DNA of 64,000 bases, from positions 1 to 64,000 of IMG/VR virus record IMGVR_UViG_3300027771_001853; one strand, given 5' to 3'. Shown here piece after piece: positions 2,878 through 56,258 of the stretch. The notes under the pieces are model-generated. The model was not told the DNA's origin. It worked only from the letters and a program-made list of their open reading frames with translations, and made no database searches. Position 1 is the first letter of the stretch. Each line of letters opens with the position of its first letter. Position numbers and translations under genes: made by a program.

Positions 2878-4254
2878 TTAGACTTTTCTATCGTTTCTAT
2901 CCTTAATATTTCGTTTGGAGTAGAACTTGTTGTAGAGTTTCCGAGCTTGGTTGGCTCTCTTATTACGTTTCCTTGGGTTGTTGGATGATGATGGTCTCTC
3001 GAAATTAACCATGAAGGATATAGCAGCGTTTTCTGGGGTGTCAGTATCTAATAGTTTCCTATATGCTTTGTTCTCCTTGTTTTGTAGTTCGTACCACAGA
3101 TATTCTAATTGAGCTGTTGGGTCGGTCACAGTTAACTTCTTATCTCGGGCAAATTGATTTAATCTTAATAGTCTAGATTTATGCCATTGTGCTAACCCCA
3201 TAGATGTCCCACCGTCACCTATAACTCCTGTCTGCCAAGTACCGGCAGACTCCGTTTTAATGTTACCGGCAATACCGGCGGCTTGTGGTGATGTTAAACC
3301 CTTTCCTACAAAGAACTCTATAATTGTATTAGGGTTAACCTTAACTGAACCAGGGTAAAATTTACCACTTAAAGGTAGTACAAAATTAGCGTTTGGGTCT
3401 ACAAGTCCTTGATTCTCAGCGTTTTTAACAGCAGTAGGGTCATTTTCCTGTGGTTTCTTATTCACATTAACTTTATCCTTCATGGCCTTTAACATTTCAG
3501 TTGTGATTACCTCACCAGTATCCGATGGGAAATAATCTCTTTGGAACGCGTTAACCGCTGCTAGTGTTTCAGGACCATATTTACCATCTATACCGAACTC
3601 AGGTAAAATATAATTTCGGGCAATTAAGTCTGTCTGCATTTCTTCTACTTGGCCCTCCATTTCTGTAGGTCCGGAACCACCAGTACATTTACTACCACAC
3701 CCATCCCATAATATAATGGTCCCTTCGTCTCTTTTTACATCTGGTTCATCAACCACACTAGAACTTTCTATATGATGTTCAGGGTCCACCCATTTATTCT
3801 TATACTTTAATCCGAAATGTAAGTGAGCACCTAATGAATTACCAGAACCAGTTTTACCTCTATCACCACCTGTAACACCTATAAGTTGCCCTTTAGTGAC
3901 TTTTTCATTCTTATTAACTTTGATTTGACTCATATGACAATAAGAACTTTTATAACCATTATTATGTTTAATAATTATCATACCACCACAAGCACCACTA
4001 TCTCTATTAATTTTACTAACAGTACCATCTGCTATAGCGAATGCTTGGGTGTAGTCCGCTTTATAATCTGTACCATTATGTGCTCTACATTTTTGACCAC
4101 TTAGACATCGTTTAGGGGAAAACTTACTATTAACACTAAGGCCACCCTTTAATGGAGCACCTAAAACCGCTTCAGATAAAACCTTGATTTTCTTGGGTTT
4201 AAGACTTTCTATTAGAATTTCTAATTGCTCACTACTGATTATTACATTTCCCAT
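2878..4254 (-). CDS. Multidomain peptidoglycan hydrolase: M23 peptidase + PG-binding + phage tail lysozyme-like domain
   Basis: HNGTD and HLHF M23 motifs; GIDGKYGPETLAAVNAFQ PG-binding motif; AAGIAGNIKTES...GLAQW...FERP lysozyme motifs. Confidence 0.85.
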   Translation of the reverse strand: MGNVIISSEQLEILIESLKPKKIKVLSEAVLGAPLKGGLSVNSKFSPKRCLSGQKCRAHNGTDYKADYTQAFAIADGTVSKINRDSGACGGMIIIKHNNGYKSSYCHMSQIKVNKNEKVTKGQLIGVTGGDRGKTGSGNSLGAHLHFGLKYKNKWVDPEHHIESSSVVDEPDVKRDEGTIILWDGCGSKCTGGSGPTEMEGQVEEMQTDLIARNYILPEFGIDGKYGPETLAAVNAFQRDYFPSDTGEVITTEMLKAMKDKVNVNKKPQENDPTAVKNAENQGLVDPNANFVLPLSGKFYPGSVKVNPNTIIEFFVGKGLTSPQAAGIAGNIKTESAGTWQTGVIGDGGTSMGLAQWHKSRLLRLNQFARDKKLTVTDPTAQLEYLWYELQNKENKAYRKLLDTDTPENAAISFMVNFERPSSSNNPRKRNKRANQARKLYNKFYSKRNIKDRNDRKV

Positions 4255-4257: not shown

Positions 4258-7200
4258 TTATAAGTATTCAAGTCCGTACCTTCCCACCCCTTGGTACCAC
4301 TTATCCGGTGGTATCATCTCCTTTAATTCTGAATTATCAGCATTTACGTAAGTTTCTAAATCATCCGTCTTGATTCTTCTATTTACGGTCCATTGTTTTA
4401 CAGAACTGTCCGTTTCTACTTCAGTAAACTTAGGGTCTGGACGGTCTACATCATCATCTTCCTTACCAACTGGTTCGTCACTTATTTGCATAGAAATTTT
4501 AATCAGTGTATCATCAGTTTTACCATCATAATCCATAATATTTATCTGGTTTTTCCCCACTTTATCCACAAAAAACACATTACCTCCAGATAAAACGTCC
4601 TCCAATCCAAAATCGGGTTCCCTCGCCTGTCCGTTTCTACGCTTAAACCCTAACCTTTTAAGAATCTCCATAAACTTTATATTGTTATTTTTTCCCCTTC
4701 TTAGTGAATCCTCATCTTCTAATTCATGAAGTAACCAATTATTCATTAATGTGTTAATTTCTTCACCCACATCATCTTCATAACCATAACCATCATAATA
4801 AATGTCAGATAGATTACTCTCAATTTCATTCCAAGGTTCCTTTAACATCTCTGAGAAGTTAGTGACCCCAAACATTTTAATAATCCATAATAGTTGGAGC
4901 CAACTAAGTTTTACAATTGTTTTATCCATATAAAAATCATCCTCAAATAAAAGTTCATCTGAAATGTGTTTGGACATCTCACTTGCTCTATGAGCCCCTA
5001 TACCATACCCTAATGCACTTATTATATCATTTAACACTTCAGTGACATCACCACCACCTATACGTTTCATTGGGTCTAGGATATCACCTTCGCCAGCATC
5101 CCTACTATTTTGTTGTATATATTCCTCATTTCCAGTTAACTCCATTACTTTATTCCAGTTAGCCAACGTATCTTTACTCCAATGTACAGCCGTATAATCA
5201 ACTTCAGTTTCTTCAACATCTTCATAGGGATGGTCGTACGTATTAGTGTCCCTACCAACCTCATAGAAATATAAATCATCGTCCGTTAACAATAACACGT
5301 CCTCCACATACCTATTCTTATCCATACGTATTTCCACACCATTATCCGTTATGTGTATTTGGTCCAATGAAGAAGAATACCCGTATGGGTTGGGTTCGTT
5401 ATCATATGATATAGTGGTGTCTTCACCCGTAAAATCTTCTAATGTATCATAGATATCCTCTTGGTTAGTTACACCTCTTTTTTCCTCATTCACCATAATA
5501 CCGTAGATTGATTTAAGAAAAGTGTCATTGGAAGATTTGTCACTATTTGATGTGGTATTGTTGGTACTGTTCATAAAGCCCTTTATATCCTCACTAGTCC
5601 TTATCATGTTAAATTTAATTTTCTCCCTCTCATCAAATTCTACATTAAAAAACTTGGCTAGTTCTGGTTTATCACTTAGATACCTTTTAAACTCTACCTT
5701 CTCTAAATACTTTAGACTATTCCCCAGCTTTTCGTAGAACGAATAAAAAGGTTTATCACGTAGAAACGGCACTTTTCCCTGATGGTGCATAATGTGAGTC
5801 TTTCTTCTATACCCCTCCTGTTCTTCTGTAATATATATTGTCCCTGTATTTAACAATTTTTTAATAAAATGGTCACCCAATCCTCCACAAACCGACTCAG
5901 AAATTAACGAACAAAAAGATTCTTTATTTAATGGTACCACAACTTTAACTTTACCATTATCGAACATAGTCCTAACCTTAATATTCTTATTTTCGATTTG
6001 TTCATTTAATTGTGGTTCCTTAAAAGTCATCCTACTATTCACCCAATCAGTTAAAATGTTAACCATTAAATCAGCTTCTTCTTGTGGTACTCCACGTTCT
6101 ACCATACCAGGAATTGTTTGGTATAGGACTTCTATCGGCACAAACCCTTCATGGTCGTAAGAATACAATTGCATCTTACCACCATCATAATCTAATTCAC
6201 CTTCTGGGTGTGGATATATACCAAAACTATTATCCAGTGCATCAAATAGTTGTGTGGTTAAGTCTATATTTTTTTTATCTTCTGGTTTGTCATACTGTTC
6301 TTGTAATTGTGAGTATATTTCAGGAAATAACTTACCATAGCTCTTAACCAACCTTCCCGCTAAACTATTAGCTTCATCTTCTATGGGTCCACCTATTTCT
6401 GGATGTGGTTTATCTATTAACCCATCTTCTTTTTGTTTATGGTGGACTAACTCATGAGCAATACTTCTTAATATATCAGCTAATTGTCTTTGGTACCCTC
6501 TAACCTTAACTATTTCTTTTTTATTATTATAGTAACCTGTAGTATATTCGGATGTTGGTTCTACCTCTACTTTAATTGGTGGTGAATTTTTAATCCCTAA
6601 TTCATTCTTAACAAAATCCACAAAATCATTATATCGTGCTTCACTATAAGGGTGGGTGGTATCTATAATATCTATTTGGGATTCACTTAATTCTAATTCC
6701 TCTTGTGTTTGGTATACGTAATCATAAAGTTCATCACCTAATAATTTCCCAAATGCTGAATCACTAGGGTAGTGAACTTTTGCCATGTTACGACTGTACG
6801 CGATATCCTCACCTATTTGTTTAAGTTCATTACCATACTCAGGGTATAAATCTGATAGGTACCTACCTATGAATCTACCTTGAGTAGCGTGACCAGAAGG
6901 GTATGACGGTGTAGAAGCACTCTGTAATGTTTCACTATCTAACGTTAACCCTTTTGCGTTTGCTATTTGCCATGGTCTTGGTCGATTATAGTGGTATTTT
7001 AATTTAAGAACTATAGCTCTCACTCCATTCATTACCTCCTTTATTTCATTAGTTGGGTACTCTAATTGTTTAGAGTTTAGGAAAATTTTAAAGTGTTTGT
7101 CCACATTATCAGCACTCTCAACCAACTCACTATCCACTTTTATGGTATCTAAATAATCTAGTTCTTCCTCAGTCGTATCTGATTCATTTTGTGGTGGTGG

Positions 7201-10200
7201 AATGTTTTTAAAATTATTTATAGGGAACCCGTTTAAACTACCTAAATCCTTACCCATTCTTCTTTTATGTTTATCTTTAGGTTCGTCCCTGAATACTAAA
7301 TCGTTAAGTGATTCATTTAATTCTCCTCTTAAAAATCCTTTTCTTAGTATCCATTGGTCCGCACGGCCAGACTGGGGAAAGGTTTGTGGGGAACTATCTT
7401 TAGGAAAAATATACAGTGGTTTCGCACGTCCTCCACCTGCTAACATAGCACCTGTACGTTGTTCGTCGGTTATGCCCAGAGGTTCAATTTGGTAATAAGG
7501 GTTATCGTAATCAGGACGGTTATCTCTTCTGTTGGGGTCGGAAGCGTTATGATTATACTTAATCCCTACAACCACATAAGGTTTATATAATTCTGGTGCC
7601 CCGAAATCATGAATCCCTTCAGTAGAGACTACTATTATCTCATCACCAACCATTAAATCTGGATTTAAGTTAGATTCTTTATGTTCAGTAATAGCTTGTG
7701 GTGGTTCAGCATAAATCCATGTATCACCTTGGTATAAACGTTTAGGTGAACTATGAATGTTATAACCAGGTTTAAGTGGTTCTGCAGGTTCTAAATAATA
7801 ATATCTTCGGTAGTCTACGTGGAGTTCATTTGTATAGTGGCTATCAGCTATTTCAATTACTCTATAAACACCAAATCTTTCTGGTATACTTTCATCTCTG
7901 CCAATACTCCTATCTTCAACATCAATTACCCTTATAATGTCATCTACTTCTAACTCAGGATTTAATTTAGTTTCTTTATGTTCTTTGATGGTTTTACCCA
8001 CTTTAATCCATGTATCTTCTTGGTACATTCTTTTTATATGCCTCAGGTAGTCACACTTCATCAGCTCTTCACAGTTAACATCTAGTGGTACTAAATCATA
8101 TGTATCAGTACCATCACCATTTCCAGACCATTTTTCATTCATCACCTCCTCTACTTTATACTTTCCCCATTTGTCCGGCATCCATTCAGATGCCATACCA
8201 ATATCAATTACTCTTATAACATCACCTACCTCTAACTTAGGATTTAACTCTGGTTGATTATGTTCACTAAGTGTTAATCTATCCACACCGTTAGCTCTTG
8301 GGGTATTGGTGAGAATCCATTCGTATATCCAAGGGTATAATAGTTTTTCATAACCCTCATAATCTCCGTACCCACTGTCCAAACTTTCTTCATATTCATC
8401 TAATTTGTCTTCTGGAACTAATGTATACCTCCACCTCCACTTTGATTTATGTCCGTTAGATTCTTTATCTACAACAGTATATGGTGTATATTTTGCTGGT
8501 CTCATCTGTTCACTAGGGACATTATATGTTGTTGTGCCATTTTCCCTCTCTCTATCTACATCCACTATGAGTATAGTATCACCATATGTTAATTCAGGAC
8601 TTAACCCTGGTTGTTCGTCGGTTTGTTCGTCCATGTTTCTTCTATTGCCATCATAATATTTGCTTGATTCATTCCCAAGTCCTTCGTCGAATTTACCTGG
8701 TTCACTAAACACAATATGGTCTAAAGTTAAATCCACTGGTAGACCTATTAACACAGAACGTAAATCTTCTTCAATCTCTTCGTATACGTAATTAAGTTGC
8801 TCTTCATATCCATCTTCTCCTAATTCACTTATCTCCCATAAAGATATATCTTGGACGGTACCATCTGGAAAACTTACTGGTAATTCTGTATCCCCATTAA
8901 CTACCACATTCACACTTACATCACCGTTATTGTAGTTGAATATATCACTTACAATATATTCGTATTGCCATTGGTCTTGTAACCCTTCTAATCTATCTTT
9001 TACAATGTTACTTAATTCTTCGTCCCCATAATACTCTTTTAGGTTATCCCAAACCACAGACCTCTCCTCTAAGTTACCCATATTAATCCCCAATAACTTT
9101 AACTTATTCTTGTCTAGTGTTGGCCCCATCTTTCTCCAGAAGTTGAATAGTAGGTCTTGTGTTTTTTTAGGGTCGTTTTGTATAATTTTAGATATTTCCT
9201 CTTCATTTAGTGATGAACCTAATTCATTTAATTCATCATTACTTACTTGACTCAGTCTACCTTCATCGATACCGTACAATTTGAAATAATCATTAAAAAG
9301 TGTCTCGTTTATTTTAAATCTTAAAGCACTTCTATCTAATTCTGACGTTAACCACGCTATTTCACCATTATAAGTGTACTCTGGACTATCCCCTGCATCA
9401 GCAATATCTGTCCAAACTAAATCATAGTCAATTACTGTTATATTTTTCTTCCATAAACTTTTAGAGAATTCCCTCTCATATATGTAAGGGTTAACAATTG
9501 TGAATGTTATCTCCGTTCTAACAATATGTTCCCTACCTAATGTATTCCAGGTTGACCTGTCCATACCACTATCGACGTGTTTAAGACTACCCACATCTAA
9601 CATAACTGGTATTACGTGTGTTGTCCCATCCACAAAACTTGCAAGTCTTTTATGTTTGACCTCCTTACCGGAGAGTTGTGACTCTTGGTTTATAATCTTT
9701 TCTTTCCAATCTTGATTGTGATATGTACGAAACCTTCTAGACTCTTTTAACTCTTTTTCTTCTACCCCTTGTTTAATAGGTAAAGGTGGGTCCAATAAAA
9801 ACTTTTGGTTAAGGTAGTTTCTTAATAGGTTTTCTACGAACCAATCTGGAACTGGTCTACTATCTGGTTCATTCGATGCAACATCCGAGACATATCGGGC
9901 AAATTTAAGTTTATATTTATCCCTAATCATTTGTAAAAGACCATCAGAAATGAAGAATACTTTACCTAATGGGTCATCACCAATAGCGACATCTGGAATA
10001 TAATCTCCTTCTGCAATATCCATCGCCTTTAGTACAACTTTACCCCACCAGGATTTATAACCTTTAGTATCTTTAAGTGCTGGTGTGATTATCTTATTAA
10101 TTGCTCTAGTCGCGGTAACACCAACAGCCGCTAATAATATTTGTGGTATAAAAAATGGTACAATTCTCCAAATAGTTTTAAATAACCCTCTTCCCATATC

Positions 10201-13200
10201 ACCAGTAATTCGTTTCCTAGTTGCCTCCTCAACTAGTTCTCGTAACTGACCAAACGTTATAGGTCCTTGTGCTGAACAAAACCCTTTTACCTTACAAATA
10301 TTATCTGTTACTTCACTGGAAGGTGCTACATACCCTTTAATAGCGTCTGTTTTACCACCAGTATAAACATATTCTGATTCTGGATTGTTACGTTCTACGT
10401 CATCTTCAACATCACTAACTATTTTTTCCCATTCACTATCTTCACCCTCAAAGTCTTCAGGGTCACTTGGTTCTAACATTCCTTGACCAAACACATCCGA
10501 ATCTTCTTTCAAGATGGCAATTTTTTTCGTATTATCTATCTCCAATTCATGGTCGTCAGTATCACCCCACTCATAGGGTTCCATATCAACATCATAATCA
10601 TACCAATGGTTTTGGGCTGTATCTGTTGCATCCTGACTATTATAAGCATTTATTTCTATGGTCCCAGATTCCCATGTTTTTTGCCAATAAGAATTGGTTG
10701 CTTGTACTTCGTATTTTAATGGGTAAGTTTTAATAGCTGTACCAACTTCACTATAATCACAAGGAACATCCTCCGCAGCATAACACCCTTCATTCCAATT
10801 ATCTATTGCCCATTTAGCGAATCTTGTTGAACTAGCGTAGTAACCTCCATCATATTGAGTAGGTATACCAAAAAGTTTTATATTTTTAATCCACTCATCA
10901 TCTGGTATTTCCAAATTAGAAATAATATAATTCAATTTATCTTTAGTAAAAATTTTAGTGATGAAATTTAAAATTTTAACTTCGTTGTTGGTTAGTGGTT
11001 CGTATATAGAATAATCTTCAGACTCTTTATCATCCCCTTCATTATCTGGTGTAAGCCAATCACCTGTGTTAGCCTCTGTTAGTATCATAGGTTTTTCGTC
11101 CAACCATTTATCTATTCTTTCCATCAGTTTTAGAAACTCAACACCAGTTACTTCTGTGTCATAGCTTTCATAATCACCATAATCGGTAACCTCAGTCTCT
11201 CCTCCCCAATCCCAAAACTCATCATTTCCTTTATCTGTTGCGTCATTTTCGTCATACGCTAAAAGAGTGACCTCACCTCTTTTGTATTCTACTTGGGAAC
11301 CACTTTCATCCCTTGTAACTGTATACCATTTTAGTGGGGTTCTAATTGGTGCACTTATATCTTTATAGTCCCCGTCTTCTGTAGCTTTATCCCAGTTATC
11401 TAGTGCAAGTTTAGCGAACTGTGAATGTTTTGCGTTATCATCAAAATTATTTGCCTTAGTTATACCAAATAATTTTAAGTATTTAAAATATTTGTTTGCC
11501 GAACCATAATTATGTGGTGTTTCAGTGGTTAAATCTTGTAGTTCAGTTCTAGTAAAATTTCTGTAAAGCATTTTTAAAATACTAAGTTCAAAATTTGTAA
11601 AAGGGTGGGTTTCTGAATTGATTTGGTTTATTAGCTCCTCATCATGATGTTTATCGGCTGACCAATCCTCCTGTTCAACAATAGAATGACCACTTGCACC
11701 AGGTAACTTTTCGTGTTGGGATTGGGTTAATTTTTGTTCATCTGACAAGTCTGGTTCGTAAGTTAATTCAGTCAACCTATCACTTAGTGTTTCATTTATG
11801 TCATAGTCTGGCTGCCAATATCCGTCATACCATCGTGTATCTACTTGTAAACATTCACCTCTTTTTCCCTCACAATACTCACCCATCATAAATTCTTCTT
11901 CAACTAACATACCAAATAGTGCTGTTGCGTTGATTTCGTGGCTATGCATGTCGTTTATCATGATACTTTCTATGGTTTCTCCAATATAATCTGTGTGGTA
12001 TTCAAACACATCTTCAGTATTATCCCATTTATCATTTATCCAATCTCTAAGGTCACTATTAATAGTCCAGCTTATTCTACCGTTGTCATCTCGGTTTATT
12101 TTACCGTATTCCTGAAAATGTTCTGCTAATTTATCTTCAATATCATTACCCATCGCATTTAATGTAGCGTATGTTGATTCGTCATTGTTTGCCCACAATA
12201 TGTAGTGTTGGATATCGTCTATTTCTCCTTCGTATTTTTCTATTAGTTCTTCTTCCTCTTCGTTTTGTGGTTGTTCAGATAGTATGTGTTCTGCAACTTC
12301 CTGAGATACACCACCAAAAATACTACTAATAGTTTTCCAATTACTTTCATCAATTTGGTCTGTCATGTAAGTGTCCCACTCAAAATTAAACCAATCTTCC
12401 GTTTCGTTAAATTCGTCATCACCACATAAGTATTGTTTAATATACTCATCTTTTCCAATCTCTATCTCAAATAGATTTGATAGGTCATCACAATTAAGAG
12501 TATAAGATACTGGAATAGGGGTTTGACTAAATTGGATGTATCTTTTTAATAACATTGACATTAGTAAGTCTATACCCTCTGTTAAACCAAGCAGTTTTAA
12601 CACACCAACATCTACCCCTCTCTTATCCCATTGTCTAAAAATCACTTCAACCATATTGTCTGGTAGGGAATCCTCAACATGTTTAATTTCATCATCATCT
12701 AAATGACCTACAGGGTATTTAAATTCTCCTGTTGGCCACATTTTTATTTGCTTACTGTCTTGTTCCAACATTCTTTCACCTTCCCCATTAAATCTTTCCT
12801 TCTTTACACCTACTAAGCTTTTAAGAAAAATCCCTAGGTAATATACAGTATCACCTTCGTTTTCTTCTTCAAATTCTACAACTTCCCCCTGTTTATTATC
12901 AGGAAAGTGTTCCCAAATTTGTGCTTCATCTTCGTCTGTGTAGTCATCCGTTTGTTCATCAAATATAAGAAAATTACCATCTGTCCCCTCATCTAACATC
13001 ATCAATATATCATCATAATCGTGCGTAGTCGACATGTCAACATCAGGTATACATAAAACCTCAACATGATTATATGGGTAAAAATAAACCTCAGTAGTTA
13101 GAGTATAGTACTCAACACACTCACAATCATCGTCTTGGATGTTTAGATTTATCTCATTTTCATCACACTCAACCTCCACGATAGACCCATCAGGTCTTAC

Positions 13201-15066
13201 AACTTCTTTTTCTTGTCTTTTACAATCACACTCTTCACCACTAAGTTCACCATAACCATCTTCATCACAATCTTCATCCCGTGCAAAAGAGGTAAATTCT
13301 CCTTTATAAGTTATATAATACCTCATAAACTCATCCGGCACCACTAAATTATCTGGTGGACCATCATAACTTTGATTCAAATGGTTTAAAGTTAACCATA
13401 CTACTTGTGCTGATTCTTTTTGGCCTCTAGGAAAACTAAAATACTGAACTAGGACATCCCAGAAATTGGTGAATGTGTACTTTCCTCCACGTCTCCTTTC
13501 CATCATTTTATAGACTGTTTTTAGGATAGAGTGTAGTTTTGGGTGGGTGTATCCGTTGTATGATAAATCAGCTTCATTTAGGTTTCCCTTAGTTTTAGTT
13601 CTTTCTAACTCAAACTCATCATCTTCCCAGTCATTCTTTCTTTGTTCACCCTCGTCATTATAATCAGAAGCTCCTGTGTCTACTAATTTAATTACGTTTG
13701 GGTACGTAGGTTGTTTTAGATATTCGGTAACGGGAACTCCTGCACGTTCTAATTCTTTCATAAAATTATAAAGGGTGTAGTAATCTTGTTTTAAGGTCCC
13801 ATTAATCATTTCACCTCTTTCGTCTGGTGGAAACTCATCCATACATTTTCCCAGTCCAGATTCGTCAACACCATCCTCACCACAATAATGTTTAAACTCC
13901 TCAACTATATCTTCATATACATCAAATAACAATATTGCGTGTACCCAATCTAAGTTTGTATTATCTATTATCTCTAATCGGTCGTTGAGTGTTGGTAATC
14001 CAGCATCATCTATTACTCTTTTAGTGTCTTCCCATTCTTCCTCCTCTTTATTAAATTTGGTGATGGAATTACCTCTAAAGTCATAGTGATATGTGTCGGA
14101 CCAATCTACACTAGAATTTAAAAGTCCTAATTTCTTTCCATCATGAACTGCATCTGCAACAGTCTCCAAAGCATCCTCAAAGTTACCACCTGGTCTATTA
14201 AAACTTTCTACATATGCTGATGGGTGATAGGTGTTGTATAAGTTACTATATAACTGGTTACGGTATTTAGGCCATATAGACGTTAAGAACTTCTTAGTTA
14301 GTTCAGTTTCGGTTGACCCTTCAGTTATCTTTTGTTTTATGTCTTTAGTTTTTACCCATTTAACTTCACTTTCTACCAGGTTAAACGTTTTTGGGTGCAT
14401 GGTAACAGATTCTAGTAGGGTATCACTTTCGTTAACTGTGACTGGCATCCCACCATCCTCAAAACCAATAACTAATAAAGATTCATTTAATAAATCACTG
14501 TTAGATTCTAATTTAGTTTCTATTATTTTTACAGTATCACCAACATTAACTACGGGATTTACCACTTCGTTGGTTGGGCTTTCTTCTAGATATTTTAGGT
14601 AATTAGCCCAATTTAGTTCTGCCTTTGCTGAAGATACCTCATCTGGGTCTTTGTCATACCCACCTTTACGGTTTTCTTCTTTTTTATCTGGGTCTTGTAA
14701 GTGATGAGTGTATTCGTGTAATAAGGCTTTAATGATGTCTTCTTTATCTTTCATATTAGGGTAATATACGAATATCTTATTTTCATATACATCGTATTGT
14801 GCTTTTGACGTTTGACTTTCTTCTCCTTCCATCTCTGGAATACCACTTAATCTAGCATAGATATCCTTCCATAATTCAACTGTAGGTGTTCCATCCACAT
14901 ACATACTTTTACCTAAGTCGTTTACGATATGTGGGTACACTTTATCTATAATATCCTGTACAACGTATTGTTGGTCGATATCGTACTGTAATTCTGAGTC
15001 TAATATTTGTTTATTCATTACTTTTTTCTTATCTTTGTATTGTAGTTCAACATACAATAAATACAT
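4258..15066 (-). CDS. Giant 3602-aa modular protein (putative virion-cargo polyprotein) with two HExxH zincin-like domains, a PAP2/haloperoxidase-like domain and repeated modules
   Basis: Uninterrupted ORF; HEYTH and HELVH; KYHYNRPRP/PSGH/SRxxxxVHYPSD; four tandem LxPxLxxGD repeats. Confidence 0.85.
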   Translation of the reverse strand: MYLLYVELQYKDKKKVMNKQILDSELQYDIDQQYVVQDIIDKVYPHIVNDLGKSMYVDGTPTVELWKDIYARLSGIPEMEGEESQTSKAQYDVYENKIFVYYPNMKDKEDIIKALLHEYTHHLQDPDKKEENRKGGYDKDPDEVSSAKAELNWANYLKYLEESPTNEVVNPVVNVGDTVKIIETKLESNSDLLNESLLVIGFEDGGMPVTVNESDTLLESVTMHPKTFNLVESEVKWVKTKDIKQKITEGSTETELTKKFLTSIWPKYRNQLYSNLYNTYHPSAYVESFNRPGGNFEDALETVADAVHDGKKLGLLNSSVDWSDTYHYDFRGNSITKFNKEEEEWEDTKRVIDDAGLPTLNDRLEIIDNTNLDWVHAILLFDVYEDIVEEFKHYCGEDGVDESGLGKCMDEFPPDERGEMINGTLKQDYYTLYNFMKELERAGVPVTEYLKQPTYPNVIKLVDTGASDYNDEGEQRKNDWEDDEFELERTKTKGNLNEADLSYNGYTHPKLHSILKTVYKMMERRRGGKYTFTNFWDVLVQYFSFPRGQKESAQVVWLTLNHLNQSYDGPPDNLVVPDEFMRYYITYKGEFTSFARDEDCDEDGYGELSGEECDCKRQEKEVVRPDGSIVEVECDENEINLNIQDDDCECVEYYTLTTEVYFYPYNHVEVLCIPDVDMSTTHDYDDILMMLDEGTDGNFLIFDEQTDDYTDEDEAQIWEHFPDNKQGEVVEFEEENEGDTVYYLGIFLKSLVGVKKERFNGEGERMLEQDSKQIKMWPTGEFKYPVGHLDDDEIKHVEDSLPDNMVEVIFRQWDKRGVDVGVLKLLGLTEGIDLLMSMLLKRYIQFSQTPIPVSYTLNCDDLSNLFEIEIGKDEYIKQYLCGDDEFNETEDWFNFEWDTYMTDQIDESNWKTISSIFGGVSQEVAEHILSEQPQNEEEEELIEKYEGEIDDIQHYILWANNDESTYATLNAMGNDIEDKLAEHFQEYGKINRDDNGRISWTINSDLRDWINDKWDNTEDVFEYHTDYIGETIESIMINDMHSHEINATALFGMLVEEEFMMGEYCEGKRGECLQVDTRWYDGYWQPDYDINETLSDRLTELTYEPDLSDEQKLTQSQHEKLPGASGHSIVEQEDWSADKHHDEELINQINSETHPFTNFELSILKMLYRNFTRTELQDLTTETPHNYGSANKYFKYLKLFGITKANNFDDNAKHSQFAKLALDNWDKATEDGDYKDISAPIRTPLKWYTVTRDESGSQVEYKRGEVTLLAYDENDATDKGNDEFWDWGGETEVTDYGDYESYDTEVTGVEFLKLMERIDKWLDEKPMILTEANTGDWLTPDNEGDDKESEDYSIYEPLTNNEVKILNFITKIFTKDKLNYIISNLEIPDDEWIKNIKLFGIPTQYDGGYYASSTRFAKWAIDNWNEGCYAAEDVPCDYSEVGTAIKTYPLKYEVQATNSYWQKTWESGTIEINAYNSQDATDTAQNHWYDYDVDMEPYEWGDTDDHELEIDNTKKIAILKEDSDVFGQGMLEPSDPEDFEGEDSEWEKIVSDVEDDVERNNPESEYVYTGGKTDAIKGYVAPSSEVTDNICKVKGFCSAQGPITFGQLRELVEEATRKRITGDMGRGLFKTIWRIVPFFIPQILLAAVGVTATRAINKIITPALKDTKGYKSWWGKVVLKAMDIAEGDYIPDVAIGDDPLGKVFFISDGLLQMIRDKYKLKFARYVSDVASNEPDSRPVPDWFVENLLRNYLNQKFLLDPPLPIKQGVEEKELKESRRFRTYHNQDWKEKIINQESQLSGKEVKHKRLASFVDGTTHVIPVMLDVGSLKHVDSGMDRSTWNTLGREHIVRTEITFTIVNPYIYEREFSKSLWKKNITVIDYDLVWTDIADAGDSPEYTYNGEIAWLTSELDRSALRFKINETLFNDYFKLYGIDEGRLSQVSNDELNELGSSLNEEEISKIIQNDPKKTQDLLFNFWRKMGPTLDKNKLKLLGINMGNLEERSVVWDNLKEYYGDEELSNIVKDRLEGLQDQWQYEYIVSDIFNYNNGDVSVNVVVNGDTELPVSFPDGTVQDISLWEISELGEDGYEEQLNYVYEEIEEDLRSVLIGLPVDLTLDHIVFSEPGKFDEGLGNESSKYYDGNRRNMDEQTDEQPGLSPELTYGDTILIVDVDRERENGTTTYNVPSEQMRPAKYTPYTVVDKESNGHKSKWRWRYTLVPEDKLDEYEESLDSGYGDYEGYEKLLYPWIYEWILTNTPRANGVDRLTLSEHNQPELNPKLEVGDVIRVIDIGMASEWMPDKWGKYKVEEVMNEKWSGNGDGTDTYDLVPLDVNCEELMKCDYLRHIKRMYQEDTWIKVGKTIKEHKETKLNPELEVDDIIRVIDVEDRSIGRDESIPERFGVYRVIEIADSHYTNELHVDYRRYYYLEPAEPLKPGYNIHSSPKRLYQGDTWIYAEPPQAITEHKESNLNPDLMVGDEIIVVSTEGIHDFGAPELYKPYVVVGIKYNHNASDPNRRDNRPDYDNPYYQIEPLGITDEQRTGAMLAGGGRAKPLYIFPKDSSPQTFPQSGRADQWILRKGFLRGELNESLNDLVFRDEPKDKHKRRMGKDLGSLNGFPINNFKNIPPPQNESDTTEEELDYLDTIKVDSELVESADNVDKHFKIFLNSKQLEYPTNEIKEVMNGVRAIVLKLKYHYNRPRPWQIANAKGLTLDSETLQSASTPSYPSGHATQGRFIGRYLSDLYPEYGNELKQIGEDIAYSRNMAKVHYPSDSAFGKLLGDELYDYVYQTQEELELSESQIDIIDTTHPYSEARYNDFVDFVKNELGIKNSPPIKVEVEPTSEYTTGYYNNKKEIVKVRGYQRQLADILRSIAHELVHHKQKEDGLIDKPHPEIGGPIEDEANSLAGRLVKSYGKLFPEIYSQLQEQYDKPEDKKNIDLTTQLFDALDNSFGIYPHPEGELDYDGGKMQLYSYDHEGFVPIEVLYQTIPGMVERGVPQEEADLMVNILTDWVNSRMTFKEPQLNEQIENKNIKVRTMFDNGKVKVVVPLNKESFCSLISESVCGGLGDHFIKKLLNTGTIYITEEQEGYRRKTHIMHHQGKVPFLRDKPFYSFYEKLGNSLKYLEKVEFKRYLSDKPELAKFFNVEFDEREKIKFNMIRTSEDIKGFMNSTNNTTSNSDKSSNDTFLKSIYGIMVNEEKRGVTNQEDIYDTLEDFTGEDTTISYDNEPNPYGYSSSLDQIHITDNGVEIRMDKNRYVEDVLLLTDDDLYFYEVGRDTNTYDHPYEDVEETEVDYTAVHWSKDTLANWNKVMELTGNEEYIQQNSRDAGEGDILDPMKRIGGGDVTEVLNDIISALGYGIGAHRASEMSKHISDELLFEDDFYMDKTIVKLSWLQLLWIIKMFGVTNFSEMLKEPWNEIESNLSDIYYDGYGYEDDVGEEINTLMNNWLLHELEDEDSLRRGKNNNIKFMEILKRLGFKRRNGQAREPDFGLEDVLSGGNVFFVDKVGKNQINIMDYDGKTDDTLIKISMQISDEPVGKEDDDVDRPDPKFTEVETDSSVKQWTVNRRIKTDDLETYVNADNSELKEMIPPDKWYQGVGRYGLEYL
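7320..8635 (-). repeat. Four tandem ~95-125-aa SH3/KOW-like modules inside the giant ORF
   Basis: LSPELTYGDTILIVDV, LNPKLEVGDVIRVIDI, LNPELEVDDIIRVIDV, LNPDLMVGDEIIVVST, each followed by P-x-x-[YWF]-x-x-Y-x-V. Confidence 0.75.
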
Positions 15067-15110: not shown

Positions 15111-15545
15111 ATGGATTTATATCTCTTCGATTTCGACAATACTTTAGTTCAAACCCCTTATCCCGACTCTATATATTATATGGACAGAAAAGAAAGTTTA
15201 AATGATTCCCGTTGGGAATTTAAAATTAACCAAGAAGTAAAATCATATTATGATAAAGCTAAGAAAAATAATAATAATAGGGTAGTCTTATTATCTAATA
15301 GAGTTAGGGAAGTTGAAAAACCTTTAAGGGAGTTACTATCTAGACTTGGGTATGTGTTTGACGATTATCTTTTAATCGAGAATGGTGAGAGGTCTAAAGC
15401 TAAAAGACTATTAGACTACTTGGAGATTATAGATGAGGTGAAGAACATTCACTATTGGGAAGATAAAGATAAACACATAAAGGACGTTTCAGAAAATGTA
15501 CCTGAAAAGTATGGTGTTGGTGTGACTGTTCACAAAGTTACTTAA
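15111..15545 (+). CDS. HAD-superfamily phosphatase (RNA-repair/PNK 3'-phosphatase-like)
   Basis: FDFDNTL (DxDxT) motif I, LSNR motif II, WED motif IV. Confidence 0.75.
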   Translation: MDLYLFDFDNTLVQTPYPDSIYYMDRKESLNDSRWEFKINQEVKSYYDKAKKNNNNRVVLLSNRVREVEKPLRELLSRLGYVFDDYLLIENGERSKAKRLLDYLEIIDEVKNIHYWEDKDKHIKDVSENVPEKYGVGVTVHKVT

Positions 15546-16227
15546 CCTTCTCTATTGTTTCGTGAGGTCTACTAGCTAAATCGTACGGACTATCATTGTT
15601 AACGACCCACACATGATTAAACTTATCTACCATATTACCTATATTATCACTAACCAATTGGTGGTAACTGGTTACCATTTCAGGTGATAGACTCCTACTC
15701 CTTTTTTCATTTCTTTCATGAGCTACACCCAAACTAGTTTTAACATAAATTAAAGTAGTTTCGTAACCATTGTCGTTAGCTAACCTCCAAACATCTTCCA
15801 TAACTTTTTGTTGTCCACCCCCAGCATCAAACACCACATTGGGTAACTCTTTCCTATCTTGTTCTAAAAATTGTTTAAGAAACCTAACCGTTACATTTCT
15901 AGGGTCAGAGGTGGTGAATGATTGACTAAGAATTTCTTGATATCCTTCTGGTGTGGATATGTTAGCTTCCCAATTATCACCCCATAGTTTCTTTGCTAAC
16001 TGAACTCGGTAGTTATCAACATTAAATTCTTTTATGTTAGGTAAATCTATTAGATTTCTAGAGACAAAACTTTTACCAGCACCTGGTCCACCAACTACCA
16101 CTATAAAATTATTATCTAGTCTATCAAACCCAACTACTTTAGCCTCAGTCATTAATATTTTTTCAATCTGTGATTCCGTCACCATAATATTAAATGGACC
16201 TTTCTTTTTCTTAATTAAGTTCTTCAT
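15538..16227 (-). CDS. P-loop kinase (AAA_33/zeta-toxin/PNK-like)
   Basis: VVVGGPGAGKS Walker A, VVFD, RNEKRSR lid. Confidence 0.8.
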   Translation of the reverse strand: MKNLIKKKKGPFNIMVTESQIEKILMTEAKVVGFDRLDNNFIVVVGGPGAGKSFVSRNLIDLPNIKEFNVDNYRVQLAKKLWGDNWEANISTPEGYQEILSQSFTTSDPRNVTVRFLKQFLEQDRKELPNVVFDAGGGQQKVMEDVWRLANDNGYETTLIYVKTSLGVAHERNEKRSRSLSPEMVTSYHQLVSDNIGNMVDKFNHVWVVNNDSPYDLASRPHETIEKVK

Positions 16228-16864
16228 ATTTCTCCGATACTTTATCCCAGTTAACCACCTTCCAAAAGTTGTTTATATATTTTTTTCTATCCGACATGTA
16301 ATTTAAATAGTAAGCGTGTTCCCACACATCTAAACCCAATAATGGTTCTCCAAGATTATCCATTAAGGGGTTGTCTTGGTTTGGTGTGGTAACTATTTTA
16401 AGTCTACCGTTTTTTAAAACCAACCAACACCAACCAGAACCAAATACTTTTCCAGAGTCTTCATCAAATTGTCTTTTAAAATTATCTAAACTACCAAAAT
16501 CTTTATTTATCTTAGTTTTTAACTCTTTAGATAGTTTTGTTTTATCTGGTGTTATATAATCTCTAAAAAATAAACTATGGTTATAATAACCACCAGCATT
16601 ATTTCTAGTAAATGCATCATAACTCTTAATGCCTTTAATTATCTTTTCGATATCTTTGGTGGGATTTTTTCTTTTAGATAATGCTTCGTTTAGTTTAGTC
16701 GTATACCCTTTATAGTGTTTATTGTAGTGTTCCCACATTGTTTCATAACCCACAAAGTCTTTTACAGAATTGTAGTCGTAAGGTAAAGTAACTCTTTTGA
16801 AGAATGTTTTCTTAGCTTCTGTTAATAAAGTACTTCTTAATATTTTTTTAATTAAATTATTCAT
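16211..16864 (-). CDS. sodA: Fe/Mn superoxide dismutase (Mn-type signature) with N-terminal extension
   Basis: HYNKH, NAGGYYNH, FGSGWCWL, PNQD, DVWEHAYY. Confidence 0.92.
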   Translation of the reverse strand: MNNLIKKILRSTLLTEAKKTFFKRVTLPYDYNSVKDFVGYETMWEHYNKHYKGYTTKLNEALSKRKNPTKDIEKIIKGIKSYDAFTRNNAGGYYNHSLFFRDYITPDKTKLSKELKTKINKDFGSLDNFKRQFDEDSGKVFGSGWCWLVLKNGRLKIVTTPNQDNPLMDNLGEPLLGLDVWEHAYYLNYMSDRKKYINNFWKVVNWDKVSEKYEELN

Positions 16865-17526
16865 CACCATTTTCTACATGACCAATACCTAGCTTTCCAT
16901 TTTGGGCCAGGTGTATCACATTTATGTCTCGCTCTAAAAGATTTTCTTGCCTCTGGGTTGGACTTTCTTATCTTCATAGTCTTTTCCCCTTTCTTTTTAG
17001 CGGATGTCCCACCATGACCAAAGTTAACTTTAACCACATTACCTTTATCATTTTTAACATACACTTTAAACTTCTTAATATCACCCCTTGTGGGTTTATT
17101 AAGTGTTACTTTTCTTCCTTGGTACTCCGCTTCTTGCAATATACTTTCAGTTTTGAAACCCTTACAAGCAGCTGGAGTCGGTCTACATCTTGGTTTCTTT
17201 CTTTCTTCACCCTCACTTCTACCACAAGCTTTACATTTACCATCATTACAGGTATTACAATCTACCCAACCACTAGTCTTACCTGGAGCTCCTTGTCTTT
17301 CAAACCAACCATGTAATCCTTTATCTTTTTCTTTAGAGAAATCTGTTTTTTCTTTTATGTCTTCTTCACTTAGCCCTTTCCATATTTTACCAGCCCTACA
17401 TTTTACCACAGCTCCTGAAGCATAAGCAGATGGCCAAACATCGTATTTTCTTTTAGCTATACTAGTACACCTATCGTCCTTTTTCTTTTTAGTTTCTTCT
17501 AGTATTCTTTTTATTATATCTCTCAC
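16864..17526 (-). CDS. Basic two-module phage protein (probable virion component)
   Basis: MRDIIKRILEE leader; internal ILQE before AEYQGRKV...KKFKVYVK...SFRARHKC module. Confidence 0.7.
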   Translation of the reverse strand: MRDIIKRILEETKKKKDDRCTSIAKRKYDVWPSAYASGAVVKCRAGKIWKGLSEEDIKEKTDFSKEKDKGLHGWFERQGAPGKTSGWVDCNTCNDGKCKACGRSEGEERKKPRCRPTPAACKGFKTESILQEAEYQGRKVTLNKPTRGDIKKFKVYVKNDKGNVVKVNFGHGGTSAKKKGEKTMKIRKSNPEARKSFRARHKCDTPGPKWKARYWSCRKW

Positions 17527-18398
17527 AAACTTAAATTTTTATACTTATTTATTACTTTTTTTAATTCTTTACTATATCTAGAATTACCCCATTTAATAAT
17601 TAAGCCATCTAAATCATCAAGCACGTCATTTTCTTCAGGACTTGGCCCAACTGTTTCTGTTATTGGGGCTTCTTCTTTTTTAAATCCTTCAGGTCCTTTA
17701 CCTGAACCGTAACCACTATCTGGGTAAATAATTTCATATCCCTTTATGTCTTGTTGTTCTCTACCTTGTCCTTCCCATTCGATAATATCTTCCTGATATC
17801 CCTTGTCATGCGACCATTCCCAAGAGTCATATGTACCATCCTCATCATATACGACAGTATCTTCCGCATCATCTTCATCGTAAGCCACTACTGTAACTTC
17901 CCATTCAATACTTTTATAGACCTGCACATTTTCCTCCATAGATAAAGTATATCTTTTTAGTGCTCTTAACTTAAGTTGGTCGTATCCGGTTATGGTGTTA
18001 TTTTTTAACCCATCAAAGTTATCGTGTGCTGCCCAAAATATTTTGTCTATTAGAGTACCATAATCTGTGCTTTTTGCATCTAACCCTATTAATTTAAGGA
18101 CGTTCAATGCCTCACTTTGCCGTTCCCATAAATTATCCCCAAGCTGAGTTCTACTAGAGAACCAATCTTTGTCATGTGCATTTACTAACAATTTTACACC
18201 TTTAAAAAATATATTTTTAGTTATAGTAGTAGTACTATACTTTTTATCCGTACGATTAAGCGTTCGGGATGTGTATGATGTTGGTGGGACCATATCATTT
18301 GAAGGCTCGGAGTCATAGTGAGGGTCGGCCCAAGTTCCACTACCCATCATCGTATCATCTGTTTCTTCTCGTAATACAGTTTTAATTATACTTTTCAT
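17523..18398 (-). CDS. Hypothetical protein; free-standing paralog of a giant-ORF module
   Basis: LKLIG..WAAHDNF..LKRY..VVAYDEDDA matches the module in 4258-15066. Confidence 0.75.
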   Translation of the reverse strand: MKSIIKTVLREETDDTMMGSGTWADPHYDSEPSNDMVPPTSYTSRTLNRTDKKYSTTTITKNIFFKGVKLLVNAHDKDWFSSRTQLGDNLWERQSEALNVLKLIGLDAKSTDYGTLIDKIFWAAHDNFDGLKNNTITGYDQLKLRALKRYTLSMEENVQVYKSIEWEVTVVAYDEDDAEDTVVYDEDGTYDSWEWSHDKGYQEDIIEWEGQGREQQDIKGYEIIYPDSGYGSGKGPEGFKKEEAPITETVGPSPEENDVLDDLDGLIIKWGNSRYSKELKKVINKYKNLSL

Positions 18399-36523: not shown

Positions 36524-36556
36524 AGTTCTTTTTTTTACGAAATTATTTATAAAAGG

Positions 36557-37894: not shown

Positions 37895-37895
37895 T

Positions 37896-54397: not shown

Positions 54398-55600
54398 TCA
54401 CCTATATCTACCATACCTATCTAAATTCCCATCAGGTTCTATAAAACTCCATTCTTCCCAGTTGGGGTCTATTTCATTACTCAATAAATCTTCTAACCAA
54501 GGTATTAATTTAATCGGTATCATAATTTCAGGGTCATATGGTACGTACCAATCTTCATTTCTCACTTCAAGTACCTCACTATTACCTTCTTCAAATGCTT
54601 CCCACACCCAAGTAGTGTATTGGTTACCATAAGCTAACCCATATAATTTAAAAACCTGTATAATATCATCCATTACCCCTCTTACCTTAACTAATGCAAA
54701 TTCAATATTTTCTTCAACATCTCGCCAACTACCATCTCTTTTTCTCATTGCTTCTGGCCATCGTCTTTGTGCATTAAAATATGCCTCCAACCATACCCTT
54801 AATTCTTTCCGGTATTTACCATCAATAATATTGAATGCTATGTCCTCATCTACATCTTCTTCTTCTTCTGTTTCTTCTTGTTCTAAAATGTGGTCTCCAG
54901 CTGAGTGTTTGTGGGACGCGTGAGAAGTTAATTGTACTTCTTCTAGTTCTTCATCAAACACATCTGAATCCATATAATCTATAAAGTCAGAAGTAAAAAC
55001 CCCTTCTGTTAAATTATCTGGTGGTGTGTTTCTGTTTTTAAGTTCACGTAATCTCCTAACTAACCTATTAAATAGATTTTTTATTGATAGTATTCCGACG
55101 GAGAATAATAAAGCTTTAAAATATTGGGGTGCCATCTCCATGGTTAGATGTTCTGAGTTCGTGTAGGCCCTGATAGCGTCTATAATTGGTAGAAACATAA
55201 ACGTAAACGAAGCTATGTCTAGTAGGTTGGTAACTACGAATCCCGAGGTTTCCGCTATTTTTATACCAATATCTTCTACGGTTTTTAAAAAAGTAACTGA
55301 TTTGTTTAGTGTCGGTTCTAGTCCCCTACCTTTAATAAGGTTTACTAGTTTTTTAATTTCCGCACTATTGTCCCTTATTACCAAAGCGACTGCTGCTATA
55401 AAAACCATAGCAATTTCTACTTCAGTAAACTTAGGGTCTTGATTTAATAACAAGTCTTTAACTGGACCATAAAATGCCGTTATACCAGCACCCCATGTGA
55501 GTGTTCCCTCTATGTGTACCCCCACACTATCAAGTAATTCTTTTAAAAAACTATCTTTAGTGTCTTGTTGTTCTAATATAAGTTCTATTTGTGTTTTCAT
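54398..55600 (-). CDS. Hypothetical modular protein (hydrophobic N-half, acidic C-half)
   Basis: MKTQIELILEQ leader; internal LTE and ILE; TATTTAT at 55608-55614. Confidence 0.7.
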   Translation of the reverse strand: MKTQIELILEQQDTKDSFLKELLDSVGVHIEGTLTWGAGITAFYGPVKDLLLNQDPKFTEVEIAMVFIAAVALVIRDNSAEIKKLVNLIKGRGLEPTLNKSVTFLKTVEDIGIKIAETSGFVVTNLLDIASFTFMFLPIIDAIRAYTNSEHLTMEMAPQYFKALLFSVGILSIKNLFNRLVRRLRELKNRNTPPDNLTEGVFTSDFIDYMDSDVFDEELEEVQLTSHASHKHSAGDHILEQEETEEEEDVDEDIAFNIIDGKYRKELRVWLEAYFNAQRRWPEAMRKRDGSWRDVEENIEFALVKVRGVMDDIIQVFKLYGLAYGNQYTTWVWEAFEEGNSEVLEVRNEDWYVPYDPEIMIPIKLIPWLEDLLSNEIDPNWEEWSFIEPDGNLDRYGRYR

Positions 55601-55631: not shown

Positions 55632-56258
55632 TTAATGAAAAATTACTGCACCATAATTAGATGCTAATGAAAAAGCTTTTTTCCACTCATCATATTTCAA
55701 TCTAAACCATCTAACATCATCTAAAGTATATTCATCATTTTCTTCTTGTCCATCTTCTTTTCTTTGTTTTAGGAAACCTGGTGTGTGGTCGGGGTGACCT
55801 TTCATTAATACCCATTTGTCTATAGTGGTCATTATTTTTTTTTCATTATCTACAAAATCTTGGTATAGTTTTTTTGAGACAACTGGTCCAATAAAACCAT
55901 CAGCGTCAGAAAAATTAATTAATTCTTCAAAGGGCCTGCCTTTGTACCCTCCACCATCTACTTTTGCCCACACATCAGAAGAACCACCATAATAACCAGC
56001 GGCATGAGCTAATTCGTCCCTCCACATACCATATCCAGTATAGGAACCAGCTCTAAACCCAAAGTAGTCATTTGAGGAGGTATAAAAACCATCATCTAAT
56101 CCTTCTGCTTGTTCGGTAAACGAATTAGGTTTTTGAAAACGCCAAACACTACCTGCTTGTTCTTCCTCCCAATCGTAGTATTCGTCTGACCAAGGTTTTA
56201 TACCTTCAGGTAATTCTATTCTTTCTAACTCACTAAGTGCACTAATGTCTAATCCCAT
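55632..56258 (-). CDS. Hypothetical phage protein
   Basis: MGLDI..FRAGSY..PFEELINFSDADG. Confidence 0.7.
   Translation of the reverse strand: MGLDISALSELERIELPEGIKPWSDEYYDWEEEQAGSVWRFQKPNSFTEQAEGLDDGFYTSSNDYFGFRAGSYTGYGMWRDELAHAAGYYGGSSDVWAKVDGGGYKGRPFEELINFSDADGFIGPVVSKKLYQDFVDNEKKIMTTIDKWVLMKGHPDHTPGFLKQRKEDGQEENDEYTLDDVRWFRLKYDEWKKAFSLASNYGAVIFH

Follow-up and report, generated by a model that had tools for sequence, protein, structure and literature searches.

A giant multi-module protein of a marine T4-like jumbo phage carrying predicted head-protease sites at its module junctions

Introduction

Multidomain proteins of phages and plasmids with 2-15 domains have been described as 'polyvalent proteins' (Iyer et al. 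2017, PMC5512222), for which release of the domains by embedded zincin-like, and rarely assemblin-like, peptidases was proposed with an explicit analogy to the polyproteins of RNA viruses (PMC5512222). In phage T4, the capsid targeting sequence (CTS) MKTYQEFIAE, 10 residues long, suffices for loading any protein into the prohead and is removed by gp21; its residues 4 and 7 matter in targeting, and residues 8 and 10 in cutting (PMC8442874, PMC9026906). Processing in T4 is prevented when Asp takes the P1 position (PMC9026906). The present analysis concerns an open reading frame (ORF) at 4258..15066 (-) of a 64,000-nucleotide window, with an intact reading frame of 3602 amino acids (aa), whose product is an acidic protein of 417.6 kDa (~418 kDa) with an isoelectric point (pI) of 4.5. 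The window comprises bases 1-64000 of the 297,623-bp metagenomic contig JGI 3300027771 Ga0209279_10000003 (IMGVR_UViG_3300027771_001853), probably derived from a jumbo T4-like marine phage with a genome of ~300 kb and a Bacteroidota host.

The original prediction, made from the letters of the window, described this ORF as a polyprotein that is packaged into the prohead and cut at [ILM]-x-E tripeptides into effector proteins. The present analysis arrives at a similar reading, to which a probability of roughly two in three is given: the giant protein is a head-targeted polyprotein, cut at its junctions by the gp21-type protease of the phage, and its modules are co-injected. This reading draws on a motif that stands at the module boundaries, is conserved although the modules are shuffled and lies in predicted linkers, and further on a protease gene assigned by homology and the aligned site of the capsid protein.

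Cleavage-site motif at the module junctions

The giant ORF looks like ~18 folded modules linked by short disordered linkers. The 17 [ILM]-x-E sites listed by the original prediction (aa 160, 247, 496, 766, 1129, 1329, 1519, 1773, 1953, 2145, 2266, 2360, 2459, 2583, 2793, 2921 and 3020) all exist and lie at module boundaries. The tripeptide is common, as had been cautioned, with 73 sites in the giant ORF vs 61 expected, or one per 49 aa; therefore its position, and not its count, carries the evidential weight. Module boundaries were set in two motif-independent ways, by BLAST homology breakpoints and by predicted structure. When the protein was compared with 18 giant homologs, 100 of 199 internal breakpoints were located ≤5 aa from the Glu of an [ILM]xE site, as compared to 41.7±12.2 in a circular-shift null, and none of 5000 circular shifts reached the observed number. 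After the breakpoints were collapsed to 17 independent boundary clusters, 12 of them lay ≤4 aa from an [ILM]xE site (null 3.0±1.5, z=6.1). The control motifs [ILM]xD, [ILM]x[KR], [AGS]xE, [FYW]xE and non-aliphatic-xE displayed no enrichment at the boundary clusters. Among 27 family proteins, the motif stands at 41% of 1513 breakpoint starts vs 18.9±1.0% at random positions, and the breakpoint residue profiles peak with an aliphatic residue at offset 0, Glu at +2 and His/Gln at +3.

The predicted structure agrees with the breakpoints. In an AlphaFold2 (AF2) model of aa 2148-3347, the junction Glu falls in coil with a predicted local distance difference test (pLDDT) score <50 at 7/7 junctions, vs 1/10 for the Glu of interior [ILM]xE sites, while 31% of the residues of this model lie in such low-scoring coil segments. 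The enrichment of sites at domain boundaries, on which the original prediction had staked its case, is thus borne out by both kinds of boundary.

The motif is also retained among the homologs, as evident from the presence of [ILMVF]xE at 73% of the aligned homolog positions for junction sites vs 42% for interior ones (p=0.002). Alignment of the homologs to the 17 junctions gives 185 positions, of which 78% have L/I at P3 and 83% have E at P1; the P1' residues at the junctions are Q, H, E, A, D and S, and the sequences beginning there include DSDVFGQGMLEPSDPE, HKETKLNPELEVDD and SLNDLVFRDEPK. The most conserved module starts with DSDVFG, and the residues preceding it across the relatives are RIVE, RITE, LLME, TINE, TLTE, NLNE, KLTE and GITE, each variant belonging to a different upstream module. 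These comparisons assign the putative cut-site motif to the junction and not to the neighbouring module.

The modules are extensively shuffled, and short conserved DNA at their borders might promote the shuffling and happen to encode L-x-E, the junction motif being a by-product of recombination. However, the P3 residue is specified at the junctions by eight kinds of codon (CTA, ATA, ATG, ATT, TTG, TTA, CTT and ATC), the nucleotide identity outside the P3 and P1 codons is 0.335 vs 0.297±0.013 for random in-frame segments, and the junctions have no common nucleotide motif beyond these two codons. The varied codons and the lack of a wider nucleotide motif therefore argue for selection on the peptide rather than on a DNA or recombination signal, and a recombinational origin of the motif is barely credible.

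Head protease and capsid protein

Pfam and phmmer found no gp21-type protease in the 64-kb window or in ~250 kb of flanking sequence of the relatives. The route to the protease led from a DNA-pattern scan of IMG/VR for leader peptides (described below) to T4-like portals, and through an alignment of two of these portals to the window's own contig. Some leader-pattern loci hold T4-type gp20, gp21 and gp23 homologs, and on one of them (L052) a core-module protein is found together with a T4-like portal. The two-portal alignment, scanned against IMG/VR, matched the contig of the window at 232,411-254,087 (locus L218).

The genes of L218 follow the T4 order, namely a TerL-like gene, portal, two small genes, protease, scaffold-like gene and Gp23-type capsid protein. 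The portal matches Portal_T4 with an E value of 7e-78. The protease gene (L218:13159-13884) encodes 241 aa, which match Pfam Peptidase_S77 (PF03420) with E 1.4e-25 (90 bits, cutoff 27) and T4 gp21 with 7e-20 in phmmer; the gp21-like protease that the original prediction required of the genome is accordingly encoded there. The scaffold-like protein (L218:13987-15468, 493 aa) is extremely acidic, with Asp/Glu/Met-rich runs and 19 copies of the motif. The Gp23-type capsid protein (L218:15497-17335, 612 aa) matches Gp23 with E 7e-72; its best Pfam Gp23 stretch covers aa 344-597 only, which suggests a large insertion in comparison with T4 gp23. The nearest relative in culture, judged by this capsid protein, is Flavobacterium phage vB_FspM_immuto (36% identity).

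The T4 capsid protein carries a 65-residue propeptide, cut after L63-T64-E65 (PMC5694885). In the alignment, I58-N59-E60/A of the present capsid protein (slashes mark known or predicted cut points) coincides with this L63-T64-E65/A maturation site. The N-terminus of the L218 protease, MRTYKLLE/A, resembles MNEPQLLIE/T of T4 gp21 ('LIE-9' in PMC9026906). Judged by homology, the phage has a gp21-type protease, and its own capsid protein bears the same aliphatic-x-Glu signature as the junctions of the giant protein.

Two other candidates were rejected. ClpP (62651..63334) was weighed as the enzyme that might do the processing, but it belongs to the canonical Clp proteases (E 1.7e-57), lies among host-like genes and is not known to have Glu specificity. 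The genes at 55632..56258 and 54398..55600, considered as a protease/capsid-protein pair, were rejected on sequence.

Leaders and free-standing modules

Giant relatives and free-standing modules begin with 9-13-residue leaders ending in [IL]-x-E, which resemble the T4 CTS. Such a leader is present in ~12 of the 18 giant homologs and in many free-standing module copies. Those of giant relatives include MKNITDKQLHE/Q and MKKSIPKIIQE/Q, and similar ones (MKELIKKILKE, MKTLIKKILRE, MKNITDKQLHE) stand on relatives of the giant protein and on many neighbouring genes. Free-standing copies of the core module (M8 below) start with MKKIKTYKDFVKE, MRIVKKYDQFINE, MELKRYDDFIINE or MSYLIKKIIKE, the free-standing PAP2 phosphatase with MSIKKIIRE (L082), and free-standing copies of the second zincin-like module with MKSLIRKILKE or MERGKTIKE. 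Free-standing homologs of several modules thus exist in related phages, as the original prediction had suggested should be sought, and most of them carry CTS-like leaders. A leader is absent from the copy of the second zincin in cyanophage S-SRM01 and from the free-standing SET gene of L009; the prediction of cargo therefore does not extend to all free-standing homologs.

The core module was found in only four of 50,697 phage records, all of uncultured phages of 635-735 kb. One of these, LR756501, a 735-kb huge phage, encodes a homolog of this module as a separate protein of 237 aa (L001:14842-15555) with the CTS-like start MDYMKSYKDKLNE/E.

The 18 giant relatives (2000-3190 aa) come from marine metagenomes and have the same modules in different order, content and copy number. 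The copies at L007 and L008 are identical and offer no divergence for a dN/dS estimate. In relatives the modules may be divided over 2-3 adjacent genes, and most of the new genes so formed open with a leader. Counterparts of the second zincin-like module occur as separate leader-bearing genes in L014-L016 and L036, and another free-standing homolog, P0086, sits on a 938-bp contig.

The other ORFs of the window have an [ILM]xE with its Glu at residues 8-20 in 21/65 cases, vs 15.9% of internal windows (p=8e-4). In IMG/VR, the degenerate leader DNA pattern returned >120 stretches among the matches listed, and a single contig often had the pattern in several genes in a row. In many contigs of uncultured phages (L021-L140; e.g. 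L036:10894-13904, L115:3-1659 and L045), runs of 3-5 adjacent genes open with the leader MKx[LI]I[KR]x[IV]L[KR]E. The leader strings were not found in a search of the literature.

A wider proposal is offered tentatively, at somewhat less than even odds. Uncultured T4-like phages of the sea, forming a broad clade with many jumbo members, may use a portable loading code, consisting of a ~10-residue leader of the MKxLIKKILRE type, an [L/I]-x-E site, or both, for capsid loading and co-injection of almost any enzyme. The cargo would be encoded by separate genes or strung together in giant polyproteins, in which the cut sites would also serve as joints for shuffling, fusion and splitting. Candidate cargo for such a code includes superoxide dismutase (SOD), PAP2 phosphatase, SET methyltransferase, a kinase-like protein and lysins. 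Leader and cut site together would make a simple predictor of virion cargo in metagenomic phage genomes that lack annotated structural proteins. In the window it would predict the leader-bearing SOD and the soluble PAP2 phosphatase as cargo, neither of which came up as virion cargo in the literature consulted.

Predicted processing of the giant protein

According to the proposed mechanism, the precursor would be taken into the prohead core, where the gp21 homolog would become active and cut the capsid protein at I-N-E60/A and the polyprotein at its junctions. The freed modules (PAP2, the two zincin-like domains, the hydrophobic core module and the small barrel repeats) would be retained in the head and later pass into the cell together with the DNA, and the leader-bearing M23/lysozyme enzyme, SOD and kinase-like protein encoded nearby would travel along with them. 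The hints of such delivery come from context, namely the adjacent M23/lysozyme gene and the leaders.

Several observations weigh against this mechanism. All predicted products are acidic (pI 4.1-5.5), whereas T4 internal proteins are basic, and the gp21-family systems studied so far mostly trim N-terminal propeptides instead of releasing many folded domains (PMC10052503). The giant gene is not adjacent to the head genes, the protease lying ~230 kb away on the same contig. The N-terminus of the window protein, MNKQILDSE (or MYLLYVELQ... from an upstream start), has Leu at P4 and not at P3. The start codon itself is ambiguous (15019-15066 (-)): the first 16 codons, MYLLYVELQYKDKKKV, are kept in homolog P0001, and homolog P0002 begins at the equivalent of Met17. 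Of the junctions, those at aa 498 and aa 1955 are weakly backed by breakpoints, and interior [ILM]xE sites at aa 905, 941, 1090, 1098, 1611 and 1684 are also highly conserved. A second AF2 model (aa 1132-2331) has a mean pLDDT of 50, too poor for its six junctions. Packaging into the prohead, cleavage and injection are steps that we infer.

Some of these points would suit a giant protein that remains uncut, as one multidomain virion or ejection protein whose [IL]xE linkers serve scaffold or core docking or domain spacing. A precedent is the virion RNA polymerase (vRNAP) of phage N4, a 3500-aa virion protein packaged unprocessed (PMC5512222), and cleavage of the present protein is predicted rather than observed, the known gp21-type processing being chiefly propeptide trimming. 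However, the conservation of a hydrophobic residue, followed two positions later by a Glu, in disordered linkers between unrelated modules is difficult to account for unless the motif is recognized. Furthermore, the fission products in relatives start with leaders ending in the same motif, and the capsid protein of the same genome has it at the site homologous to the T4 cut. An uncut protein is therefore regarded as unlikely, and cleavage at the junctions by the head protease is preferred.

If the cuts occur, the giant ORF would be, at the level of sequence, the clearest example of a true polyprotein from a tailed phage, with ~18 proteins arising from one product through the head-maturation protease. 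It would also suggest that large phages load a changing arsenal at fixed stoichiometry by one targeting event, and would account for the free variation of module order.

Module organization

The only Pfam families found in the giant protein were PAP2 (aa 2684-2777, E 6.9e-8) and, with a weak match, the zincin-like DUF3920; PHROGs gave a single uninformative match. Comparison with tape measure proteins (TMP) yielded no TMP family match in Pfam or PHROGs; the model displays mixed beta and alpha globular modules, and the TMP-named PHROG matches belong to the M23/lysozyme domains of the neighbouring gene 2878..4254. A near-DNA search of the giant ORF against the 50,697 phage records gave no match.

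All modules are encoded on the minus strand. M1 (14581..15066, aa 1-162) is zincin-like, with HEYTHH at aa 117 and the weak DUF3920 match (E 1.8e-4); it is delimited by a breakpoint at q19-163 and ends LEE/S. The small module M2 (14320..14580, aa 163-249) ends ITE/G. M3 (13573..14319, aa 250-498) ends LNE/A at a weaker boundary, the breakpoint cluster being 10 aa off. M4 (12763..13572, aa 499-768) ends MLE/Q, a motif kept in 8/12 aligned homologs, and M5 (11674..12762, aa 769-1131) ends IVE/Q, with breakpoints q764-1129 and q759-1122. M6 (11074..11673, aa 1132-1331), which ends LTE/A, is paralogous to M7 and to the free-standing gene 17523..18398. M7 (10504..11073, aa 1332-1521) ends LKE/D, the motif being kept at 22/24 aligned positions.

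The core module M8 (9742..10503, aa 1522-1775) contains the long hydrophobic helix IWRIVPFFIPQILLAAVGV and ends LKE/S. It is present in 25 of the 26 relatives compared (not in P0007) at 62-79% identity, and 115 relatives or clusters of it, in proteins of ~200 to 2340 aa, were detected among 1.84 billion cluster representatives. M9 (9202..9741, aa 1776-1955) ends LNE/E at the least supported boundary, with the breakpoint cluster at aa 1941, and M10 (8626..9201, aa 1956-2147), the interior of which is covered by no homolog, ends MDE/Q.

M11-M14 (7312..8625, aa 2148-2585) are four tandem beta-rich repeats of 94-124 aa with predicted cut points after aa 2268, 2362 and 2461. They adopt a predicted small barrel fold of DUF4314/Tudor-SH3-like type, and a family member has a DUF4314 Pfam match. 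The original prediction placed the start of each repeat a few residues after a site, and each begins directly after the Glu (E/QTDEQPGLSPEL, E/HNQPELNP, E/HKETKLNP and E/HKESNLNP). It likewise described the PAP2 and second zincin domains as bracketed by sites, in accord with the limits of M15 (aa 2586-2795) and M16 (aa 2796-2923).

M15 (6682..7311), which ends LSE/S, is a PAP2 phosphatase with all catalytic motifs present (KX6RP, PSGH and SRX5HX3D, as KLKYHYNRPRP, YPSGH and SRNMAKVHYPSD). Its fold is nearest to the soluble class A acid phosphatases PhoN/PhoC, with a Foldseek probability of 0.97 and an E value of only ~0.03 for a 1200-aa query. M16 (6298..6681), the second zincin-like module, contains HELVHH and a downstream conserved E in IEDEAN, and ends LQE/Q. 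M17 (6001..6297, aa 2924-3022) is an alpha/beta module with pLDDT 85-91, breakpoints q2920-3024 in 7 homologs and the end LNE/Q. M18 (4261..6000, aa 3023-3602) is a C-terminal region common only to P0001 and P0007 with no supported internal cut site; for the C-terminal 582 aa, a PDB sequence search and the ESM Atlas yielded nothing usable. A SET domain is found in one giant homolog, P0007, as an internal module (aa 847-942), and in L009 as a free-standing 106-aa gene without leader (L009:8695-9015).

The two HExxH modules bring in the model of Iyer et al. 2017, in which M1 and M16 would do the cutting at the junctions, acting in cis or in trans and either ahead of injection or after it, and the head protease would have no role. 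The HExxH and downstream Glu of M16 are invariant across the aligned family members, as in the MPTase definition (PMC5512222), and relatives without an internal zincin have a zincin-led gene in the same cluster (L014-L016). Yet 10 of the 18 giant homologs have no HExxH, zincin-free single-domain proteins (SOD, PAP2, core modules) bear the same [IL]xE leader, and P1-Glu with P3-aliphatic is a gp21-family signature, found also at the maturation site of this phage's capsid protein. The zincin modules have no significant match to a solved peptidase, as the M16 alignment in a PDB profile search matched no solved zincin or peptidase significantly. Self-processing is considered improbable.

The name effector proteins, given to the released modules in the original prediction, is apt only in part: PAP2 and the two HExxH modules can be recognized in the window protein, and SET in one homolog, but no function can be assigned to most modules. 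This lack of recognizable enzymatic function would also fit a giant protein that the head protease cuts into scaffold, core or inner-body fragments, organising the head interior or expelled from it, instead of into injected effectors. T4 core proteins are cut many times, and the giant protein shares its strong acidity with the scaffold-like protein of L218. On the other hand, the catalytic motifs of PAP2 are intact, the modules are confidently folded in the predictions and also exist as free-standing genes, and the great variation of module content between relatives fits an arms-race cargo better. A purely structural role of the fragments is accordingly given little chance, and co-injected cargo is preferred.

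Neighbouring genes and genome context

Several neighbours of the giant gene carry leaders. The gene at 2878..4254 (-) encodes a 458-aa protein with M23 peptidase, peptidoglycan (PG)-binding and lysozyme-like domains, and has the leader MGNVIISSEQLEILIE/S; in relatives where it was found, an M23, PG-binding and lysozyme/SLT gene adjoins the giant gene or lies ≤~5 kb from it. A P-loop kinase-like protein of the AAA_33/zeta-toxin type, to which the Pfam hits are attributed by inference, is encoded with an N-terminal leader at 15538..16227 (-). The Fe/Mn SOD (16211..16870 (-)) has a 26-aa N-terminal extension, MVMNNLIKKILRSTLLTE/A, containing NNLIKKILRSTLLTE ahead of the SOD domains, which begin at aa 27; the extension suggests a capsid-loaded SOD. 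The free-standing M6/M7 paralog (17523..18398 (-), 291 aa) has the leader MKSIIKTVLRE/E. The 400-aa protein encoded at 54398-55600 (-) has the leader MKTQIELILE/Q and a multi-helix hydrophobic N-half joined to an acidic C-half by HILE/QEE; it is a candidate two-module substrate.

The window has a GC content of ~34%, with almost every gene on one strand. Host-like genes in it encode a TonB-dependent-receptor-type protein, a type IX secretion system (T9SS) sorting domain, SOD, ClpP, a GlnA-like protein, SAM synthetase, thioredoxin and NusG, and because of these many host-like genes the source is taken as a jumbo phage of a Bacteroidota host. Host-like envelope genes whose products have signal peptides are clustered at 32099-43320 (-). 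They encode a 1321-aa protein, three smaller proteins of lipoprotein- or outer-membrane-protein-like type and a putative 801-aa TonB-dependent receptor (Plug, barrel and CarbopepD_reg, attributed by size). A T9SS Por_Secre_tail match falls somewhere within this gene set and points to a Bacteroidota host. Cellular-type genes at 48483-63975 and in L003 encode a TROVE/Ro-like RNA-binding protein, GlnA-like protein, thioredoxin and glutaredoxin, and further ClpP (E 1.7e-57), SAM synthetase, DUF932 and PcfJ-like proteins; a ribosomal protein S21 gene was called in L003. The T4 late-promoter motif TATAAATA occurs 19 times vs 15.5 expected, which is no enrichment, and none is located upstream of the giant gene on the coding strand.

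Comparison with known systems

One polypeptide of ~18 modules, with an architecture that differs in each of the 18 homologs, places the giant protein in the polyvalent class. As in that class, giant multidomain proteins here combine unrelated enzymatic domains with interspersed zincin-like HExxH domains, are extensively shuffled and are linked to peptidoglycan hydrolases (PMC5512222). PAP2, SET, zincin-like and DUF4314 domains all occur in the giant-protein family; PAP2 and SET have 0 occurrences in the text of Iyer et al. 2017 (PMC5512222), and the polyvalent hallmark domains ART, SNF2, methylase, ArdC-N and RNA polymerase were not found here by Pfam. The original prediction overstated the novelty of a eukaryotic-virus-like polyprotein strategy in a phage: since the giant protein fits the class described by Iyer et al. 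2017 (PMC5512222), a strategy of this general kind was already on record. For polyvalent proteins embedded peptidases were proposed and no cleavage sites were defined (PMC5512222), whereas the junction motif here points to a trans-acting head protease. New are a defined motif, the predicted cut site, at essentially every joint, its assignment to a trans-acting T4-type head protease encoded by the phage itself, for which the site of the capsid protein serves as internal control, and the link to CTS-like leaders common with single-domain cargo. If the cuts occur, the 2017 hypothesis would become testable, with exact predicted cut sites, an identified protease gene and the capsid protein as positive control.

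The vRNAP of N4 (gp50, 3500 aa) is of similar size, packaged in the virion, injected, and contains a zincin-like domain. N4 differs in phage type, the present phage having a T4-like head module, and no RNA polymerase module was found in the Pfam and PHROGs scans of the giant protein or in the scan of the 18 homologs. In the jumbo phages phiKZ, 201phi2-1 and SPN3US, a gp21-related protease cuts many head proteins at many sites after Glu, and the mass of ejection proteins is large. These phages prefer A/S/G at P3, whereas [AGS]xE is present here at 0/17 boundary clusters; cleavage there removes or fragments long N-terminal propeptides, and separation of strings of folded domains is not reported.

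The closest likeness is to T4. The gene order gp20-gp21-gp22-gp23 and the cut site of the capsid protein are conserved between T4 and this genome. The T4 internal proteins (IPI-III, Alt) have, like the proteins described here, a short leader ending in [I/L]-x-E and cleavage by a Peptidase_S77 enzyme after Glu, which is predicted in the present case, and in both systems a diverse cargo has only the leader in common. The leader consensus is MKxLIKKILRE or MKIxITE here and MKTYQEFIAE in T4, and the N-terminus of the window protein fits it poorly. T4 cargo consists of single, mostly basic proteins that are cut once, whereas the predicted cargo here comprises up to ~18 acidic modules in one 418-kDa precursor with 17 internal sites.

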